In this document: one piece after another, positions 11,850 through 52,000 of the stretch
How positions within the stretch are numbered: position 1 is the first letter of the stretch
Layout: each line of letters opens with the position of its first letter
NCBI GenBank assembly: GCA_000388065.2
Contig: KB932208.1
DNA: 64,000 bases
Source: Fonticula alba ATCC 38817
Lineage: Eukaryota > Protista > Nucleariida
Strand: one strand, 5' to 3'
Program-made: the position numbers and the translations under genes
Notes under the pieces: model-generated
The model's database searches: none
What the model was told of the DNA's origin: nothing
What the model saw: only the letters and a program-made list of their open reading frames with translations

Positions 11850-13448
11850 ATGGTACTGTCGCCTTCGGGAGGACCCCCCGCAGGAGCTCCCGCTGCCTTT
11901 TGCGATCATCTCCGCCTTCCCCCTTCGCTTCGCCCTCTCCTCTTCCTTCGTCCCACATTTCCCCCCTCGGCCGCTTTCTTACTGAGCTCTTCCCCCATCG
12001 CCACTGCCGGTTGTTGCCGGTTGTTTCCCCCGGCCTGTTGTCTCTGGCGTCCGGTCTCCTCATCCAGCTGCGGTACGTGCGCTGGCGATGTCACTTTCCC
12101 ATTGCGTCTCTCTTCCGGGCGGGATGGCCTGTTCTAACTGTTCGTCCTTCCTATTTTCCCTCACAGTCGCCAGACTCGCGAGCGGCGGGAGTATCTCTAC
12201 CGCAAGTCGCTCGAGGCCACCGAGCGCGAGGAGTACGAGAAGCGCCATCGCATTCGCGAGGCCTTGAACGGTATGTCCTCCCTTGTGGCGTCTTGCCGGG
12301 CTCTTTCACCTATTCACTCTTACTGACCCACTTGCTCCCCCCCCCCCCCCCCCTGTGTCCCCCTCCAATCTGCAGCTGGCAAGCCCATCCCCACCGAGCT
12401 GCGCGATGACGAGCTTGCCCTGCGAGAGAAGATGCAGCTCGAGGACCCGAACTCTGGAGGTGCGCGCATAGATCAAGCTCCTCCTTGCTCTGTCTTCCTT
12501 TCCGCCTGAACGCTCACCGGTCTGCCCGGCGCTTCGCATGTCCGACATAGTCCCCGACCATGATGATGAGTATGCCAATGCCGGCATGTTCGACCCGAAG
12601 ATTGTGGTCACCACCTCGCGCGACCCCAGCTCGCGCCTGGACCAATTCACCAAGGAGATGCGCCTGGTCTTCCCCGGCGCCCAGAAGATCAATCGCGGTA
12701 ACTATGTGATCAAGGAGCTGGCGGATGCCTGCCGCGCCAACGGCGTGACGGACCTGATCATCTTCCACGAGACCCGTGGCGAGCCCGGTGTGTCGCTCGG
12801 ACCTCCTGCCCTTTGCTCCCTTCCCCCCTTCGCCCCGCTGCCCGGCAATCTGACCATGTTCTTTTCATTTCCTCCAAGATGGCATGATCGTCTCGCACTT
12901 TCCCTACGGCCCGACGGCCTACTTCTCCCTTCACAATGTGGTGCAGCGTCATGACATCGAGGACCGGGGCACTGTGAGCGAGCAGTTCCCGCATCTGATT
13001 TTCGACCAGTTCACCACCCCCTTGGGCCTGCGTGTCAAGTCCATCTTGCGCCACTTGTTCCCTGTCCCCCGGCCGGATAGCCGCCGGACGATGACCTTCG
13101 CCAATCGGTCGGACTACATCAGCTTCCGGCACCATGTGTTTGTGCGCCATGGCGGCGGCGAGCGCGGTGGTAATGAGGTGGATCTCAGCGAGGTGGGCCC
13201 TCGTTTTGAGCTGAAGCGTATGTCTTCTTTTGCGCCATTCCCCTTTCCCTTTTGCCTTGCCTTCTGACCTTTCTTCCTCTCGCCTTTTCCCCTCCCTTGT
13301 CCTGCGCCGGTGTGTGCGTATGTGTGTGTGTGTATCTGCGGCTAAAGTTTACAAGATTACCCAGGGCACCATCGATATTGGCGAGGCCGACGTCGAGTGG
13401 GTCGCGCGCCCGTACATGAACACCTCCCACAAGCGCGATTTCCTGTAG
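11850..13448 (+). CDS. IMP4: U3 snoRNP protein IMP4 (Brix domain), multi-exon with ATG-only first exon and 5-nt microexon
   Basis: [103 protein letters not shown]. Confidence 0.96.
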
Positions 13449-33334: not shown

Positions 33335-35033
33335 GTTCTCCACGTTTCCCAGGTGCTCTCTTGGCAGGAGGGGCAAGGCGGGGAAGGAACGGTTGAGCAG
33401 GTCGAGGAGGGGGGGGGGGGGGGGGGGGGGGGGGAAAAAAATGGGTTTTGGGGCCCGGGGAGGGAAAAAGAAGGGGAGAGTTAACACATTTTTATTAAAA
33501 AAAGAAAAAAAACAAAGAAAGGAAAGAACACCACCCAAAGGGAACTATTAAAATTTAGAGGGGAAGTTATACAACCCCACAACCACCCCACCTGAAACAG
33601 CGGCCCAGGCACCGAGCCACACTTCCCCGCCAGTTGCGAGGAAACGGGGGGAGGGAAAATGGTTCGCCAGGGGGGCGCGTTCCAGCGAGCGAGAGAGAAT
33701 GCCCCCGGTCACTTGAAATGGCGGACCTGGCTTGGCCAAAACAGAGAGCCCTCGCCCGGCAGTCATCCCCCCCCCCCCCCCCCAGCCGAAAGGGGGAAGT
33801 CTGGCTTCCACAGCGCCGGCCAGCAGCCAGCCCGAGCCCCGCCTCACCAACCCAAGCCGGGGGGGATCAAGCTTGACGGACCGCCACGGGCGGGCGAGAC
33901 CAGAGGACACCCCGCCCCCAAGGCGCTGGCGGCCCTTTTTTTCGCAGGGAGGTGGCGGGGCCGGATGTGGACGGGCCATCGCGGAACTGCCAATCGTCCC
34001 CGGGTTCCGGGCGCCCCCCGCCGGGGGGCAGGGAGGCCTCGGTCTGGCGGGTCTGTCTGTCGGCAGGCCGCGCTCCGTTTCTCCGCCACCCAGCCTGGGG
34101 CCCCATCATTTCACAGAGGTCTTTTCCCAGAGGCGGGCGGGCGGACGGAATGCCCAACCCACGCGCGTACCAACAAACAAAAGCCGGGCGCCGGAGCACC
34201 TCCCCTCGAGGGAGCGCTATGGAGGGCCGCTGGGCCTGATTTGCCGGCGATCCATGTGATACTCTTTCTGAGGGGCCCAAATGCGGACTGGCACAGCGGA
34301 TGATGCTTCTGGCGGGGCTTCTTAAGGGCTGGGGCCGGGCAAGGAAGCGACCGCAGAAAGGCCGGACTTGACGAATGTCGCCCTGTCAGACGGGTGGTCC
34401 ATCACGATGTTCATGTTCACACGTTGTAGAGTCCCCGTAGGGGGACACTTACCTTGTGGTTGAAGATTTGGGGACCGCCGTAGGCTGGAAACAGAGCACG
34501 GAAAACCAAGCGCATTGTTCACTCGGATGGATTGCCGCCCCGAGGGGAGGAACGTCAGGACCCAGGTTGATCCGGTCACTCTTCTTTTTTTCCCTTTTGC
34601 CCCCCCCCCCTCCCCCGGCAGAGACAGCGCATTCAGGCACATTGTCCGCCTGTCCGCACGGCATCGCCCCACCGGGCATCCTTCTCCCTTGGTCTTTCGC
34701 ACCTCGGCCCGCTGGCCGCCAGGACCCCTCCCACGCAGGAAGGGGAGGGGGCCAAAAGGCGACGTGCTTCCGGGAGGGGGGGGGGGGGCGGGGGCGGGGG
34801 ACCACACACGGCTCGGGCTTGGACGGGTTTTATACAACTTCTATTTGATGCGTGTGCCCCCAGGCGACACGCTAATGGGATGACAGTGGAGATGCGCGTG
34901 TGCGTGTGCGGGGAGGAAAAGCGGCGCGGGAAGGAGGAGCGCAATGGGACAGGGCAGCCCCTCCCCCTCCGCCCCCCCCCCCCCCTTCCGGTGGAAGTGT
35001 CACTTCCTCGCCGGCGGCCACTTTCCCCGCCAC

Positions 35034-41139: not shown

Positions 41140-43062
41140 ATGGACAACATCCCCACCAACGTCAGCTGGGCCGAGCTGGCCGGGCAGATGGTCGACACGG
41201 AGTCGCCGATGGGCCGGCTCTCGCTGCAGGCCTTCCACCTGCTTGACCAGTTCCTCTACCCCTCCGGGCCGCCGACCGAGACGCTGACCCTCACGTCGCG
41301 ACTGCTGATCGACGTCAAGAATGTGATCGTCATTTTTGCGCTCTTCCGCCTGCTTTCGCCCTTTGTGCTGGATGTCATCCGCCACGGCCCGGTGGTGGTG
41401 GCCGGCGAGTATCGCGATGCCCTGATGCGCACGGTCTTCACCATGGGCAAGGCCATTCCGGCGGTCCGCCGTCGCATTGACCGCGAGCTGGCCGGCGCGA
41501 AGCAGCAGATCGAGCAGCAGGTGGCCCCGGTGTTCCCGGGGATCAACCGGTATGCGGCCCTGCCCGAGCGCGGCCTCTCGGTGGACGAGGTGAAGCAGGC
41601 GCTGGATCGCCATGCCGAGCTGGGCACCGTCCAGCTGGAGAAGGGTCGTGCCTCGGGCACCCTGTACTGGGGTGGAACCGACATCACCGAGCTCAGCGTG
41701 CACTCCTTCGAGCGCTTCACCTGGAGCAACCCCCTGCATGCGGACATCTTCCCCGGTGTGCGGAAGATGGATGCCGAGGTGGTGGCCATGTGCCTGGACA
41801 TGTTCAATGCCGGTCCGAATGCCGGTGGCACCACGACCAGTGGCGGAACCGAAAGTCTGCTCCTGGCCTGTAAGGCGCATCGGGACTGGGCCCGCGCCAC
41901 GCGTGGCGTCACCGAGCCGGAGATGTGCGTCTGGCATTATTCTTTCCCCCTTTTCATGTCCCTTCTTCCTGGGTCCTCCTCTCTCTCTCTCTCTCTCTCN
42001 NNNNNNNNNNNNNNNNNNNNNNNNNNNNNNNNNNNNNNNNNNNNNNNNNNNNNNNCCCCCCCTCTCTCTCTCTCTCCCTCTCTCACTCTCGCTCTCGGTC
42101 TCTCCTCCTTTCTGACGTCCCTCCTCCTCGGTCGGTGGCCCCCATCAGGATTGTCCCGGTCACGGCGCATGCTGCCTTTGACAAGGCGGCCAGCTACTTC
42201 AACATCAAGATCTACAAGGTGGGCATCGATGGCAAGACCGGCAAGGTCAACCTGGCTGGCGTGCGCCGTCTGATCAACCGGAATACCATCATGGTGCGTC
42301 ATCCGGGCGCCCCATTCTCCGGCCCCTGGCTTTTTGCCCTGCCTCGGGGAGCATGTTGCCCTCTTTCTTCCCGTCTCGTGGCCACTCTGCTGACCCTGCC
42401 GGCCTTTGTTCGCTTGCCCTGCCGGCCTTTGCTCGCCGGACAGCTTGTTGGCTCGGCTCCCGGGTTCCCCCATGGGATCGTCGATGACATTGAGGCTCTG
42501 GGTCGGATGGCGCGCCGCGCTGGCATTGGCCTGCATGTGGATTGCTGCCTCGGTGGCTTTGTGGTTCCATTCATGGAGGAGGCTGGCTTCCGCCTGCCCG
42601 GGCTCTTTGACTTCCGGGTGCCCGGGGTGACTTCCATCTCGTGCGACACGCACAAGTATGGCTTCGCGCCCAAGGGGTCCTCGGTGATCATGTACGCCAC
42701 GCGTGCCCTGCGGGCGTATCAGTACTTTGTGACGCCGGACTGGTCGGGCGGTATCTATGCCTCGCCGTCGATCGCTGGCAGCCGGCCTGGCGCCGTGCTG
42801 GCTGGTGCCTGGGCTACCATGGTGTACATGGGCCGTGCTGGCTATGTGGCTGCCACTCGGCAGATGGTGTCCGCCGCGCGGCGCCTGACTCAGGGCATCC
42901 GCGAGATCGAGGGGCTCTATGTGATTGGCGAGCCGCTGATCACGGTGGTGGCCTTTGCCAGCGACAAGTATGACATCTTCGTTGTCAGCGCCGAGATGAC
43001 CAAGCGTGGCTGGAACCTCAACACGCTGCAGTTCCCCTCCAGGTGCGCATCTCGCTCTCTCC

Positions 43063-43108
<46 letters not shown>

Positions 43109-43468
43109 AAACGAGTGGGAAATGGGGCCTGCACGGACTGCTTCTCTTGACCCCCGGCCCTGGGAAACTGACTCTCCTTTTTGTTCACCCTCTTCGCCCC
43201 TCCCCCCTGGCCCTGGACTGCCGCTCGATGTGTCCTCTTCGTGCTCCCCCCCCCCAGCATTCACTACTGCTGCACCATGCTCACCACTGACCAGGTGGTC
43301 AACCAGTTCCTCGCCGACCTGGGTGAGATTATGACCGAGGTTCGCCGGCACCCGGATGCCAAGCCCACCGGCACGGCGGCCATCTACGGCATGGCTGCCG
43401 CCCTGCCCGATCGGTCGATCATCTCCGAGGTGACCACCACCTTTGTGGATGCCCTGTACAAGGCGTAA
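41140..43468 (+). CDS. SGPL1: Sphingosine-1-phosphate lyase (PLP-dependent group II decarboxylase fold), multi-exon
   Basis: SGTLYWG, SNPLHADIFPGVRKMDAEVVAM, TSGGTESLLLACKA.RD, AHAAFDKAA.YF, LVGSAPGFPHG.VDDI, LHVDCCLGGF, SISCDTHKYGFAPKGSSV (PLP Lys), SPSIAGSRPG. N-terminal TM segment. Confidence 0.96.
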
Positions 43469-45423: not shown

Positions 45424-47110
45424 ATGGCTGACATCGCTTCCGGCTTGCTTGCCGCGAAGCCCGAGGTGGCCAGCCTCACGATCGCGGGCTTCAGCTTGAA
45501 ATCCATCCTCGCCACCTTTTTCCTGGCTACCTTCCTGTTTGAGGTGCGTCACGCTCCGGCCGATGTCGCATGCCCTGGGTGGCCCGCCGAAGGGATGAAG
45601 TGTCGAGGCGGGGACCGGGGAGGCTTCCTTCACATGCTCACACGTAGTCCCTCCGTACCTCCACCTGGCAGCGTTATATCTCGGTTCGGCAGATCCGGAT
45701 GACGCGCATCAAGAAGCGCCCGGCCATCTTGAATGGCATTGTCGACGATGACGAGAAGTTCCTCAAGACCCAGGGTATGTGTTCTCATCGGCCTGGGGGT
45801 CGCGCGCCGGAGCGTGTCCGGATCAGCCCCTCCTCTGCCCGTCTCTTCGCTGGCCATTCCTGACCTCCTCATGTGTCAGATTACTCCTACGACAAGCTGG
45901 TGTTCGGCTTCGTCACGTCGACCCTGGAGATGTTCAAGTCCATGGTCTTCTTCCACTTTGATCTGCTGAAGGCCACCTGGGATCTTTCGGCCCACCTGCT
46001 GGAGGCGTATGGTCCGGCTTCGCTTGCGGGCAACCAGCTGGCCATTTCGCTCATCCTGCAGAACATCCTCTTCTTGTCGGAGACCCTGTTGGAGCTGCCC
46101 CAGTCCCTGTATTACAACTTCGTCATTGAGGAGCGGGTGCGTGTCAAGCCGGCCGTTCGCCCCCCCCCNNNNNNNNNNNNNNNNNNNNNNNNNNNNNNNN
46201 NNNNNNNNNNNNNNNNNNNNNNNNNNNNCCCCCCGCGCGCGCACGCGCGCCAACATAGTATGGCTTCAACAAGCAGACCCTGCGGCTGTTTGCCACCGAC
46301 CAGGTGAAGAACCTCTTCATCAGCATGATCATCCAGACGGCCATCATCCTGCCCATCATTTATCTCATCGGGTGGGGCGGTGAGCGCTTCTACCTGTGGG
46401 TGTACTTCTTCCTGCTGGGTGCGTTTGCCTGCGTCATTTGTCACGCATGCCATGCCGGTGCTTGCTCGAGGCTGACAGCGGAGCGGCCTTTTCGCCGGCC
46501 CGGAAACCCCCTCTCCCACCGTCATCCAGCCTTCCAGCTGGTTTTCCTGAACATCTACCCGACGCTCATCCAGCCGCTCTTCAACAAGTATGAGCCTCTG
46601 CCGGAGGGGCCGCTGCGAGACACCATCTACAAGCTGGCCAAGAAGATCTCCTTCCCCCTGACCGCCATCTACACGGTGGACGGGTCAAAGCGTTCGGGCC
46701 ATGCCAACGGTGCGCCGGCTTTTGTTGCCTGGTAGCCAGCGAGTCAGCCAGAGTCACACGCCCCCCCCCCCCCCCCACCCCCCTCCCGCCCGTACCACCC
46801 CCCCCCCACCCTCCCGCTCTCACCCCCCCCCTCTCCCCCCATCCTCCTCAGCCTACTTCTACGGGTTCTTCANNNNNNNNNNCCATCCTCCTCAGCCTAC
46901 TTCTACGGGTTCTTCAATAACAAGCGCATTGTCATCTACGACACCCTGATCAAGTCCCTGGAGCTGCCGGAGGTGGAGGCCGTCATGGCGCACGAGCTGG
47001 GCCACTGGTACCACAGCCACAACCTCAAGAACATGGCCATCCAGTACGACAGATGCTTTCTTTTTCTCTTTTTCGCATAAAGCATCCTTCCTTCTGCTGG
47101 GCTTTCTTTT

Positions 47111-47141
<31 letters not shown>

Positions 47142-47886
47142 CCTGTCCCTCTCCGCCTCATTCATCCGTGATGGTCATCCCGTCGCCGCTCGGTGCCACT
47201 CCTCAGGCAAGTGTCCACCTTCTCGATGATGTATGCATTCAGCTTCTTCGTCTTCAACCGATCCCTCTATTCCTCCTTCGGCTTCCATGTGCCGGCGGAC
47301 CAGGAGCTGCCCTACCTGGTCGGGCTGACGCTCTTCCTCCAGTGCTGGTCGGCTCTGAACCTGGCCATGAAGCTTCTGATGGTGCGCCGTCGGGAGGGGG
47401 ATTCCTGCGCCGCGCCCCGCTTCGGGCATTGGGCCTCTCCTCGACTGACACCCTCGCTTGCTCCCCTTCTCCTCGCCTGGCCGTTTGGACGCAGAATATG
47501 GTGTCACGCTCGTTCGAGTTCCAGGCCGATGCCTTTGCCTGTGGGCTCGGCTATGGCAAGGTCCTGCGTTCGGGCCTGCTCAAGATGCAGCTGGAGAACA
47601 TGTCCCAAATGCTGCCGGACTCCCTGTACTCCGTACGATCACATCATGGCCGGGGAATGGGCTCTACGGCTCCTTCCTAGGCCGTTGCCTCTTCGCCCTG
47701 GGTGTTTGCTTTTTAAATGCCCGTCCCTTGTGCCTCTCCGTGCGCCCGCTGACTCCTTCTTCCCGCCATGACTGGCCTGCCAACTTGCGGCCCTTGCTTT
47801 GAACCGTGCAGCTGTACAACTACACCCACCCGCCGATGCTGGAGCGCATCTCGGCCATCGACAAGCTGCTCCAGAAGAAGGATTAA
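45424..47886 (+). CDS. STE24: CAAX prenyl protease 1 (M48 zinc metalloprotease), multi-exon
   Basis: [67 protein letters not shown] (HExxH), SRSFEFQADAFA, DSLYS.YNY.HPPMLERI. Confidence 0.96.
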
Positions 47887-48461
47887 GCATTCGCCCCCCC
47901 CCCCCCCCCCTTCGGTTCCTCCCCTCGAAGCCCGGTGCAATGCGCAGGGGCTGCTCGTTTCTCTTGAAGCATGCCATCTTCCCGGGGATGCCTTTGTACT
48001 GTGGGATACACATGCACACGAGCGATGTGTCGTGTATATTTTTTTCGATCAGCCCCACCCTTCCGGGGGGAGGAGACGGGGCGGGCGCGGGGACAGGGGG
48101 GGCGGGGGACGAGAAGTGGCCAAGGAGGAAGTTGGCCGATTTGGGCGCCTCTGTCCGCCGAAAAGGAGCTGGGGGAGGGGGGGGGGGAGGGGAACAAAAT
48201 TTCGATGATTGTTTATCTGCCTGGTCGAGGCGCTGCTACCGGAGCCGGCGAAGCGGGAGAGGGAAGATGGTCTTGCCGGGGAGCAACACAGCGAGCAACA
48301 AGCAGAGGGGAAGAGTGTGTGGGTGAGGGCTGGTGCCTGGCACTTGGGGACCCGGAACGGGGACAACCCTCATTCTAATGTGCGTGTGCGCTGGGGGCGT
48401 CGGTTTCCTTTTTTTTTTTTGCCACGGCGTGGTGGGGGCCTCCAAGCCGGGGAATGTCTCT

Positions 48462-48693
48462 TCACAGAATGACGCAGGGATCCGGGAAATGGTCAGCGGT
48501 GGAGTCATTAGGGGAGCCTACACCACCGAGGGTGCGATCGTCAAGTCGGGGGGGGGGGGGGGGGGGGGGCCTTTGCGACCTGGGGGGGAGAAGGAACAAA
48601 AAAGGCCGAGGACAGGAGGGGAGGGAGGGAAGTGGTGGCGGTCGAACGAGGCACGTAGCACGCACTGGTGGTGGTCTTGGCAATGATCTCCAT
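48462..48693 (-). CDS. Putative 27-aa CAAX-terminated (prenylated) peptide precursor, a-factor-like; exons 48693-48666 and 48517-48462
   Basis: Kozak context GCCGCCACG-ATG-G. GTGCGT donor at 48665 and TAG acceptor at 48518 join in frame, and the intron carries the C-run typical of introns here. Product MEIIAKTTTSSPNDSTADHFPDPCVIL-stop. Confidence 0.68.
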
Positions 48694-49046
48694 CGTGGCG
48701 GCGGACAGAGGGTTCTGTTGGTGTGGGGTGCGGCCAAGGGTGCTCAATGAGGGAACAGGTCCTGGGCGAGGTGTTTCCAAGGGAGGTGTGGCCGTGGTGG
48801 TAAGCGCGGCAATGACGGGGGTGACTCGGACGATCGAGGGTGGTGTGTGTGTAGCCTGGCAGAAGTGGAGCTCTGAGGTAGCCACGAGAGCCGGGGGATA
48901 GCGGGATATGGGCGATTGCACGAGGGGAATGACTTAACGACGAGAGGGGGGATGAGTGCGCATGCAGAGGCGTGTGCGTTTGGCAAGAGGAGCTGAGGAG
49001 GTGGTAGATGCTCTTTCGTGTTTGACCGGGGCCACAGGGCTGGGTC

Positions 49047-49054
49047 TTTTTATA
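49047..49054 (-). promoter_or_regulatory. TATA-like box (TATAAAAA) upstream of the CAAX-peptide gene
   Basis: An AT-rich TATAAAAA on the minus strand is rare in this GC-rich DNA and lies about 350 nt upstream of the peptide ATG. Function is inferred. Confidence 0.4.
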
Positions 49055-52000
49055 GGCCACCCCCGGGGGCCGTCAGGCTCGCCTCGTGGCGAGGAGGCAC
49101 CAGGAGGCAAGTTGTCCCCCAGACGCGATGTCCATCGGGGGGGGGGGGGGGGGGGGNNNNNNNNNNNNNNNNNNNNNNNNNNGTCCCTGGACAGCCGATG
49201 GCACATGGGCATGTGGTGCCGGGAAATTCCATACTGGCCGTGGCCCATGCGCTTGGCCGGCAATAGATCATCCAGGGCACCTGCACCTGCACCCGCGCCC
49301 ACACCGACACCCACACACAGACATACGCACACAGGGCCAGGGGACGGGAGGGAGCCCGCAGGAAGGAAAGGGCTCAAGAAGGGGGGCAAATTCACGGCAA
49401 GTGAGACACTTGGCCCCCGGCTGGCGCCCCCTGCGTGGCTCCGTCACGCCCCTGCGGCCCCCGGTCCCGATGCCGGTCTGGGGGGCGATTGTTATTGTTG
49501 GTCGTCTTTCCGGGAAGCGTGATGCTTCTTCGTCCGGTAGAGTGTTCATTAGCCGGGCTTGCGCCGAGCGGGTGCGCCCGCTGGATCTGGCTGTTTGCCC
49601 CCAGGGTAATGCCACACATGCGGACCGATTGTCGAGATGCCGGGCTGAGAGCCAATCGCGATCGGCGAGCAGGCAGATTGCGTGTTTGGGCTGCCCACTG
49701 GTCCTGCCGAAGCCCCGAACGGAGGGAGGCAGCGAGACCGGTGAAGAGTCGAGCGCATGTGCGGCGCTGGCGAGGGCGAGCATCGAGACCGGGGGCGGGG
49801 GGGGGGGGGGGGAGATATTCAGTGTCCGGGGGCGCCGGAGCTCCCGGGTGTGCGTTAGGGCTCGTCCAGGCGCGATGGGCTCATTGCGGGCAGATTGGCA
49901 ACGCAATTCGGACAAACGCAATGCTTGTCCGGCGTCGTGAGGCAACACTGGGACTAGCCCGGGATTTGGCCGGTGGTGGCCGGAGAAGCAAGGGCACCCC
50001 GTGTGGCGTGCGTCGGCCAAGGGCAGCCGGGCATACTTCGCCCCTCAGCGCCCGGCGGTCTCACACGAGGGCGGATGTGGCGGAAAAGGAGTAAGCGAGA
50101 TGGCGCACCCTGCTGAGCGGCCCAGCCAGTTGTAGGTCTGATGCCAGCGAATGGGCTCCGCCCCCGGGACCAGGGGCTGGGGAAAGCGGAATGCATGCAC
50201 CGGGGATGTCTGTCTGTCCGCCTGGCCTCGGCTGCCCCCCCCGGGGGGGGGGGGGGGGGGGGGGAGAGGGCGGGGCATGGGCCGCGAGGGGGATGGGTGG
50301 GACTGGCCGAGTCTGTCGGGCGGGGTCCGGTGGTCAGAGGGTGCGGGGAGAGGGCGGGGGGAGGGCGGGGGGAGGTGGGCTCCCATAGCTAGGAGGCCGT
50401 CATGCCTCCCGCTGCCAGAGGCGGCGCGCGCTCGGGCGGCATGGGCATAAGTGCCGGACATGGGCATGCTGCGCTCGCGGGTGAGTTCGGGAGCTTGGCT
50501 GTCGAAAAGGGGCAGGACGCCGGGCCGTGGACACATGTGAATGCGTGCTTGCGCATTCGGTTCTGCGCGAAGCTGCTCCTGTGTCCTGGCGTCGGATGAT
50601 GTCTGCTCGGATGGGTTGATGTCTACTCGTGCGCGTGCGGGGGCCGGGAGAAGGTGGCGATGCGAGTCGCTGGTCGAGCGGGGGGGGGGGGGGGGGGGGA
50701 CCTGGACGGGAGACGGGCACAAAGAAATTGGTGGCCGGGCTCGGGGAAATTGCGGTTTCTCCTACCTCCGGGGCCAATGAACCGGAGCGTCTGGACCCGC
50801 GCCGGCGAGGTATAGCAGGCAGGCAGGCAAATGAACCCCCCGGCGACGCGGCCCTTCCTTTCCTCCAGGCCTCCATGAGCGGGCGACATATTGCTGGGGG
50901 AGGAAAATTCGTGCCTGGAGATTGTTTCCCTGTTTCGGGCGTTTGTCAAGCGGATTTTCGTCCGGTGGCTCCATGACAAGGCTAGTTCCACCCTTCGCTC
51001 CTCGGCCGGTCTTGGCTGCCTTCCCGGTCTACCCTTCGCCCGGGCTGGTCCCTCCCGGCCGGTGTGCTCGATGGGCTGCCTGCCCGGCAAAGGGCTCGGC
51101 GCATCCTGGTGGCGACCTTCTCCGGGGCAAAAAAGGAAAAAAAAAACCCTCGCCCGCCCAGACCCGCGGGGGGCCGAGAGGGAACCATCTCTGGGTGTTG
51201 AGCTCCGCGAGCAGTGGCTCGTGGGCGGCCGACAAGCTGTCGCGAGTCTCGCGAGGCGCCACCACCGACTCTCCCCAGGCCAATGGGCCTTCGAGGTCCG
51301 GCCATGGGGGGATAAAACGCCGGACCCCTCGCTGGCTGGTGAGACCAGCGGCATGGCGGGAGCCATCCCCGGGGGTTCGCCCGAAACTGGCCCCCTCTGC
51401 CTCGGTCTCCCTCGGGGAAGATCCAGCGGGGCAGGCGGCCGGTCGGTCGAAAGACCAACGGTAGACGCCTGCGCTCGCCGCCTGCCTGCGCTCGCCTCCC
51501 CACGGCCGCGGCACTGAATAGAGGACAGGACCACTCGACAGGGGGCCCGTGCCCGGAAGCACCAAGCCGAGAAATGCCACCCCGAAGCGGGAGGTGACCC
51601 GGACGGGCTTTAACGGGTCGGGGTCACATAAAGACCATCGGCAGCATGGCCAGTGGCGGGGAATATCTTGACAAGCATGTCTGTCCGTTCCACATGCACC
51701 CCCCCCCCCCCCCCTTGCGAGGCGTGTGTGCTGTGTTTGAATATGTGCATATACGTGCGTATGATCGCGTGCGTGCGTGTGTGCCGAGGCGCTCGGCTCC
51801 CCGGGGTGTCTTCTTGTTTGGACGGTCGCCGATGGTGGGGGATTGTTTTTATTAGGAGGATAAACCAGCCACTCGGCCACGGGGCCGCTTCCCCGGGGAG
51901 AGGGCGAGTGTGTATGTATGTGTGTGGCGCCTGCCGGCCCTCCGGCGGCCTGGACGCACTTGCCGTTCGGTTGGGGGCATTGCCGAGACGGGGCACCCTG

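Follow-up and report, generated by a model that had tools for sequence, protein, structure and literature searches.

A spliced, RNA-supported micro-gene in Fonticula alba with a 27-codon open reading frame for a candidate prenylated CaaX peptide

The stretch of Fonticula alba DNA analyzed here (the window, 64 kb of contig KB932208.1) carries two neighboring transcription units that face each other (Table 1). The plus-strand unit is a multi-exon gene for a Ste24/ZMPSTE24-type CaaX prenyl protease of the M48 family, whose homologues all carry the domains PF01435/PF16491 and are named STE24 endopeptidase. Its coding sequence is interrupted by six RNA-validated introns of 111 to 186 nucleotides (nt), several of which have GTGCG donors, and the intron at 46709-46894 contains a 10-N assembly gap. 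The minus-strand unit is a two-exon gene with a short main open reading frame (ORF), referred to here as the candidate. The two genes are convergent (tail-to-tail), with stop codons 576 nt apart; the mapped RNA 3' ends lie at position 47911 at least for Ste24 and at about 48202 for the candidate, leaving up to ∼290 nt between them.

TABLE 1 Coordinates of the candidate micro-gene and of the neighboring protease gene (positions are those of the window)
Feature	Coordinates	Strand	Length	Remarks
Ste24/ZMPSTE24-type CaaX prenyl protease gene (M48)	45424..47886	+		Multi-exon; HELGH present; product ends ...LYNYTHPPMLERISAIDKLLQKKD*
Ste24 exons	45879-46135, 46258-46417, 46529-46708, 46895-47043, 47207-47380, 47494-47632, 47812 onward	+		From spliced RNA contigs
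TATA box, TATAAAA	49048..49054	-		Lies 51-57 nt before the outermost 5' end of the RNA contigs
Exon 1	48666..48997	-	332 nt	5' UTR of ∼304 nt plus first 28 nt of CDS; from RNA contigs
Upstream ORF (uORF), MRTHPPSRR-TAA	48934..48963	-	9 codons	Weak start context ctgcATGc; same frame as main ORF
CDS part 1	48666..48693	-		ATG 48693-48691 in gccgccacgATGG; MEIIAKTTT plus first base of a Ser codon
Intron	48518..48665	-	148 nt	GTGCGT...TAG, acceptor ...gtgtag/g; internal C run of ∼25 nt; RNA joint
CDS part 2	48462..48517	-		(S)SPNDSTADHFPDPCVIL plus TGA
CaaX box codons TGC GTC ATT CTG (CVIL)	48465..48476	-		From sequence; TGA directly after
3' UTR	48202..48461	-	∼260 nt	RNA contigs ending 48202-48207

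The window, part of a GC-rich and homopolymer-rich genome, contains seven N gaps (including 49157-49182, 46169-46228, and 46873-46882), several of them flanked by long C/G homopolymers, and C/G runs of at least 10 nt occur 70 times in its 64 kb. One N gap, at 49157-49182, is located ∼100 nt beyond the TATA box of the candidate on its upstream side, which leaves the far-upstream promoter sequence incomplete. Farther away, a plus-strand ORF at 41925-43334 contains a domain of the pyridoxal-dependent decarboxylases (PF00282, E = 6e-10); on its upstream side, this ORF is broken by the N gap at 42000-42055.

A preliminary description, made from the letters alone, had read the minus-strand locus as a hidden gene with a Kozak start, a GTGCGT donor, a C run, a TAG acceptor, and an in-frame join, and each of these elements is present where it had been placed. 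The minus strand reads gccgccacgATGGAGATCATTGCCAAGACCACCACCA/GTGCGT...(C run)...GGTGTAG/GCTCCCCTAATGAC...TGCGTCATTCTGTGA, and the spliced frame encodes the 27 residues MEIIAKTTTSSPNDSTADHFPDPCVIL, followed by TGA at 48464-48462. With A at −3 and G at +4, the start codon matches the Ste24 start (caccaccATGG) in context, and the GTGCG core of the donor is common to several Ste24 introns. At 27 codons, the RNA-validated spliced ORF has the length of an a-factor-type precursor, and its last four codons, beginning with the Cys codon at 48476, place a C-terminal CaaX box directly before the stop (CVIL-TGA, 48476-48462).

According to the RNA data, the small spliced gene at the predicted coordinates is real. 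The data came from two samples of the source organism, whose four RNA runs, assembled as Logan contigs, were aligned to positions 45800-51700; since such contigs are directionless, the strand of each transcript was taken from its intron ends. The splice junction for which the preliminary description had proposed an RNA check was found in all four runs, as a joint (48516 to 48665, depth 4.5 to 6.6 in the RNA contigs) that skips 148 nt and, with the cut moved by +1, has the ends CT..AC, that is, GT..AG on the minus strand. Record 5 of run X11 joins 48207-48516 to 48665-48726, and record 8 of run X6 covers 48665-48997 and then continues for 44 nt more across the joint. Record 11 of run X7 covers 48742-48997, so that two independent assemblies (X6 and X7) stop at 48997, and record 7 of X6 covers 48202-48420. 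Taken together, the contigs define a spliced transcript of ∼648 nt running from 48997 to about 48202 on the minus strand, and the proposed gene model (start, intron, frame, and short dedicated transcript) is thereby fully supported. A separate run search also found exon 2 in all four RNA runs (share, 0.46 to 1.00). As a positive control, the same runs yielded a fully spliced contig of the plus-strand neighbor with its six GT..AG introns. RNA depth was ∼5 for the candidate versus ∼30 for Ste24, and depth at the junction, relative to that of Ste24, was 0.20 to 0.23 in one sample and 0.14 to 0.15 in the other; in these RNA data, expression of the candidate is modest, at about one-fifth of that of the neighboring gene.

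Four further joints (46781 to 48171, 46781 to 49136, 47914 to 50678, and 48192 to 50678) were rejected as assembly artifacts of homopolymer runs and not splicing; they have sides of 19 to 21 nt, noncanonical ends, and poly-C/G letters in between. Farther upstream of the candidate, the region appears silent in the four small RNA runs, which gave no contigs at 49346-50527 and 50725-51700, and what depth appears at 50528-50724 falls where homopolymer joints are located.

The TATA box motif TATAAAA occurs twice in the window, both strands counted, compared with 0.11 copies expected from shuffled sequences; the other copy, at 34828-34834 (minus strand), may mark another TATA-driven gene. At the opposite end, the last exon measures 316 nt, and an ATAAAC at 48216-48211 (minus strand), in an AT-rich island directly before the ends of the RNA contigs, resembles a poly(A) signal. 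A run of 12 A's at 48409-48420 (minus strand) lies inside the 3' untranslated region (UTR) and could cause internal oligo(dT) priming artifacts in poly(A)-based libraries. The spliced RNA contains four ATGs in total. The first opens the uORF, whose TAA (48936-48934) bounds the main ORF because the two share a frame; the second opens the candidate ORF; and the third and fourth open a 90-amino-acid ORF from 48508 and a 45-amino-acid ORF nested in it. Since the stop codon of the main ORF sits in the last exon, the splice would not trigger nonsense-mediated decay. The arrangement is that of a small ORF at the first strong AUG of a dedicated capped, spliced, and polyadenylated mRNA. Neither the transcript nor its intron contained a snoRNA or any other known RNA in an Rfam search of 47600-49400 at a permissive E value, and the sole match, to WT1-AS (E = 0.9), was set aside as meaningless.

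We next turn to the question of whether the 27-codon ORF is coding, for which codons were scored against a table trained on the RNA-validated Ste24 coding sequence (a small set), with the base composition of the transcript itself as background. The mean log-likelihood per codon was +0.11 for the candidate ORF, −0.95 for the 80 in-frame codons upstream of its ATG, −0.87 for the 90-amino-acid ORF, and +1.03 for Ste24, which is the training gene. None of the 363 other stop-free 27-codon windows of the transcript matched the summed score of the ORF (their maximum was −1.5, versus +3.8), which makes the ORF the sole such window with a positive score, and stop-free shuffles of its own bases reached that score in 0.095% of trials (P = 0.00095). 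The bias is visible in the adenines: the 18 A's of the ORF are split 11/7/0 over codon positions 1, 2, and 3, and the probability of finding no A at position 3 is (2/3)^18 = 6.8e-4, or 1.5e-3 when the ACCACCACC repeat enters the count a single time. Position 3 is A in 2% of Ste24 codons and in 19% of the codons of the upstream in-frame region, the latter being the background value. The signature is thus specific to the frame, its effect is modest relative to that in Ste24, and a stretch of 27 codons gives limited power; under the same background model, 5 to 25% of stop-free windows from other noncoding stretches match the score of the ORF. With these qualifications, the coding-type codon bias of the ORF is statistically supported, and the ORF is the most plausible coding unit of the transcript.

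The CaaX box is to be judged against how often such an ending arises by chance. Among the 1,747 stop codons in the six frames of the window, four are preceded by C-[AVILM]-[AVILM]-X, two of them with strict aliphatics, and the chance rate at a random ORF end is ∼1 to 2 per 1,000. The three remaining motifs are not plausible gene ends: two lie in noncoding-looking frames, and one belongs to a Brix-domain exon running into an intron. The latter is the Brix-domain-like (IMP4/RPF-type) exon at 12854-13264 (plus strand), whose frame continues into an apparent intron and terminates fortuitously at CLAF-stop. For a genome measuring a few tens of Mb, we estimate some two thousand occurrences of the motif alone, and the main ORF of a short transcript would end in a CaaX box by chance in ∼0.1 to 1 cases per genome. 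On account of that last figure, the motif alone is weak evidence and proves nothing by itself; the RNA-validated gene model and the frame-specific codon bias raise the odds beyond what the motif gives.

Homologues and relatives of the candidate were sought in several ways. An exact look-up in a collection of 15 billion proteins returned no match to the 27-amino-acid peptide, and the 90-amino-acid alternative, the 50-amino-acid unspliced ORF, and the 91-amino-acid exon 2 ORF were likewise absent; since none of the four products is in the collection, the locus is unannotated. BLASTN and TBLASTN searches with the transcript and the peptide as queries found no paralogue in the 64-kb window, and a degenerate DNA pattern for DHFPDPCVIL-stop had 0 matches in JGI metagenomes. 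When the last 40 residues of the genomic exon 2 ORF were used in a homologue search, three candidates shared words with the query and none scored. The neighbor was used as an anchor as well. Homologues of the Ste24 ORF spanning exon 2, intron, and exon 3 had at best 42 to 66% identity, and the best match to Ste24 exon 3 in metagenomes had 68%; neither the homologue search nor the metagenome search led via Ste24 to a syntenic locus in a close relative. Separately, the DNA runs X5, X8, X9, and X12 to X16 (labeled as another organism, 2025, and as soil, sediment, sludge, and feces metagenomes) share 6 to 48% of the 31-mers of this mostly noncoding stretch, and for the runs of the other organism (X8, X9, X13, and X14) and some metagenomes the share of the locus is given as 10 to 50%. 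It follows that other public data sets contain this species or one very closely related to it.

These results bear first on the possibility that the locus gives rise to a spliced, polyadenylated noncoding RNA (or to fortuitous short ORFs) in which CVIL-stop is a chance motif. We regard this as a genuine minority possibility. CaaX-stop arises by chance ∼4 times per 64 kb, and one chance case over the hundreds of short transcripts of a whole genome would not be unlikely; on a strand with 42% C, stop codons are rare and a 27-codon ORF is unremarkable; the exact look-up, the metagenome pattern, and the homologue search all returned no homologue; and the transcript is expressed at a low level and has a long 5' UTR (304 nt) with a uORF. 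What speaks for translation instead is a codon-position bias that is specific to the frame and to the ORF (P of ∼1e-3), together with an optimal AUG context, and no Rfam family of the kind that would make the transcript a host gene (for example, a snoRNA) lies in the transcript or its intron.

A translated transcript might also yield a different product, either the 90-amino-acid protein from 48508 (MTPPLTISRIP...) or a form of the candidate with a non-AUG N-terminal extension, of up to ∼107 amino acids, in the CaaX frame. The former is the longest ATG-initiated ORF of the spliced RNA, and the CaaX frame indeed contains no stop in the 80 codons before the ATG. The start codon of the 90-amino-acid ORF, however, stands in an unfavorable context (cctaATGa) and comes after an optimal AUG; this ORF also has a noncoding codon score and reads through the run of 12 A's, and the codons of the would-be extension score as noncoding and carry A at position 3 as often as the background; neither product is in the protein collection. 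We therefore regard a different product as improbable. More improbable still, and largely refuted, is the reading in which exon 2 would terminate a larger CaaX protein (for example, a G-gamma subunit or a small GTPase) with upstream exons beyond the gap at 49157-49182. Rho/Rap GTPases and G-gamma subunits do typically end in CxxL, and an N gap does lie close upstream of the TATA box, but exon 1 is one continuous RNA block (48997-48666) joined to exon 2 and containing the in-frame TAA at 48936-48934, no RNA contigs fall on 49346-50527, and the TATA box stands directly upstream. Because that TAA sits within continuous exon 1, a long protein translated from far-upstream exons, a prospect raised in the preliminary description, is excluded. 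To another ORF and a larger protein jointly we assign a small residual probability.

The best explanation of the locus is, in our view, a micro-gene transcribed by RNA polymerase II, whose main ORF would be translated into the 27-residue prenylated precursor, and we give this explanation an even chance. Its parts would be the TATA box, the first exon of 332 nt, the intron of 148 nt, the last exon of 316 nt, and the poly(A)-signal-like element. Maturation of the peptide can be predicted from the CaaX box. The C terminus has the features of a substrate of protein geranylgeranyltransferase type I (GGTase-I): Cys at −4, aliphatic residues at a1 and a2, Leu at X, and a flexible upstream linker, which is polar and Pro rich (STADHFPDP). 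By sequence rules, X = Leu sets the peptide apart from the a-factor class with its farnesylation signals (X = A, M, S, etc.). In Saccharomyces cerevisiae Rho5, CVIL occurs naturally as the CaaX box, and it is regarded as a canonical geranylgeranylated sequence; it gives a gel shift with yeast GGTase-I, is completely modified by human GGTase-I in yeast reporters, and also shifts when farnesyltransferase is present (PMC11304957, PMC11152559). The earlier expectation of a geranylgeranyl rather than a farnesyl group, drawn from X = Leu, is therefore sound as a prediction.

Prenylation, removal of the aaX residues, and methylation of the peptide are predicted from established enzymology. GGTase-I would attach a geranylgeranyl group to Cys24, after which Rce1 or Ste24 would cut off the VIL tripeptide and a Ste14/ICMT enzyme would methylate the prenyl-cysteine left at the C terminus. 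The resulting lipopeptide would be small and acidic, with 24 residues at most, and its biogenesis would be like that of an a-factor-type pheromone precursor. That the peptide is both translated and prenylated appears to us evenly balanced. Beyond this point, N-terminal processing, export, receptor, and biological role are speculative: the lipopeptide might be trimmed at its N terminus and leave the cell through an ABCB-type pump to serve as an intercellular cue, or it might stay behind as a membrane-anchored micropeptide. Of these two fates, export would be slightly favored because the characterized genome-encoded CaaX peptides of <50 amino acids are, to our knowledge, all fungal pheromones. 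The function originally suggested, that of a secreted mating or aggregation lipopeptide, is hypothetical, and that the peptide is in fact an exported a-factor-like signal we consider doubtful.

The proximity of the candidate to a Ste24-type gene invites comment. Ste24 acts twice on a-factor, removing aaX and making the first cut at the N-terminal side (PMC2148179, PMC2134828). The chance that one of the four CaaX-stop motifs in the 64 kb would lie within 1.5 kb of Ste24 is ∼0.2, and adjacency in a eukaryote is no evidence of a functional link; we note it as a coincidence worth remembering.

The locus matters at several levels. At the least, it is an RNA-supported spliced micropeptide gene that annotation pipelines have missed. 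If the noncoding reading were true, it would be a spliced noncoding RNA with a coincidental motif, and a prenylated micropeptide that stayed in the membrane would count as an unusually small CaaX protein. More far-reaching is the scenario that a nucleariid-grade amoeba outside the Fungi exports a geranylgeranylated, carboxymethylated micropeptide as a cue (for aggregation, sorocarp formation, or cryptic mating) to a receptor other than Ste3, which we put forward tentatively and think rather unlikely. We know of no description of a sexual cycle for Fonticula, and the secreted prenylated peptides known to us are solely pheromones of the Dikarya; the literature searched yielded no lipopeptide pheromone outside the Dikarya. 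If true, the scenario would place a-factor-style lipopeptide signaling at or before the base of the Holomycota and would provide a natural example of a geranylgeranylated secreted peptide. A CaaX micro-gene in a close relative of the Fungi makes it testable whether lipopeptide signaling is older than the Fungi or convergent in an aggregative amoeba, and the peptide is short enough for synthesis and assay.

Among known systems, the candidate is most like the fungal a-factor-type precursors (S. cerevisiae MFA1/MFA2, M-factor, the basidiomycete Mfa/Phb precursors, and the a-factor-like precursors of Sordariomycetes and Leotiomycetes), with which it shares a very short ORF, a Ser/Thr-rich N terminus, a CaaX C terminus, the lack of a signal peptide, and a gene of the sort that annotation usually overlooks. 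Yeast a-factor ends in ...WDPACVIA, and the D-P just before the Cys region of the candidate recalls this ending. Unlike the fungal a-factors, the candidate has an intron and no detectable sequence homology to them, its X = Leu predicts a geranylgeranyl and not a farnesyl group, and it comes from an organism apparently outside the Fungi. The a-factor likeness originally noted is one of form (length, Ser/Thr-rich N terminus, and D-P-x-C/CaaX) and does not extend to detectable homology. The precursors of a-factors have <100 amino acids, typically ∼21 to 65, and a Ser/Thr-rich N terminus is common; the CaaX/CPAX end is the single strictly conserved feature of a-factor genes and yet is not exclusive to them, CTIL ends occur among putative a-factors, and identification of an a-factor needs evidence of conservation and expression (PMC10569646). 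Maturation of a-factor proceeds by prenylation, aaX removal, and methylation (PMC2134810, PMC2148179, PMC10569646), followed by a nonclassical Ste6/ABCB export pathway (defined in PMC2134810).

As a GGTase-I substrate, the candidate compares with Rho5, to whose tetrapeptide its CVIL is identical, which predicts the same lipid and the same postprenylation processing (PMC11304957, PMC11152559; the yeast Rho CaaX boxes are listed in PMC11304957). Related CxxL substrates are S. cerevisiae Rho1 (CVLL) and the G-gamma subunits. Whereas Rho and G-gamma substrates are folded intracellular proteins of 65 to 330 amino acids, the candidate has just 23 residues in front of its aaX and neither a GTPase nor a coiled-coil domain. 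On the receptor side, Ste3, the canonical receptor family for a-factor, is listed among the fungal novelties (domains found to ≥99% in fungi) in a survey whose data set included Fonticula (PMC10406608). The arbuscular mycorrhizal fungi, which are non-Dikarya, have STE3 and STE6 orthologues and no identified pheromone gene (PMC3834313). They pose the same question as the locus described here, whether lipopeptide pheromones exist outside the Dikarya (PMC3834313), from the opposite side: there the receptor and the exporter are known and the peptide is missing, and here it is a candidate peptide that is in hand.
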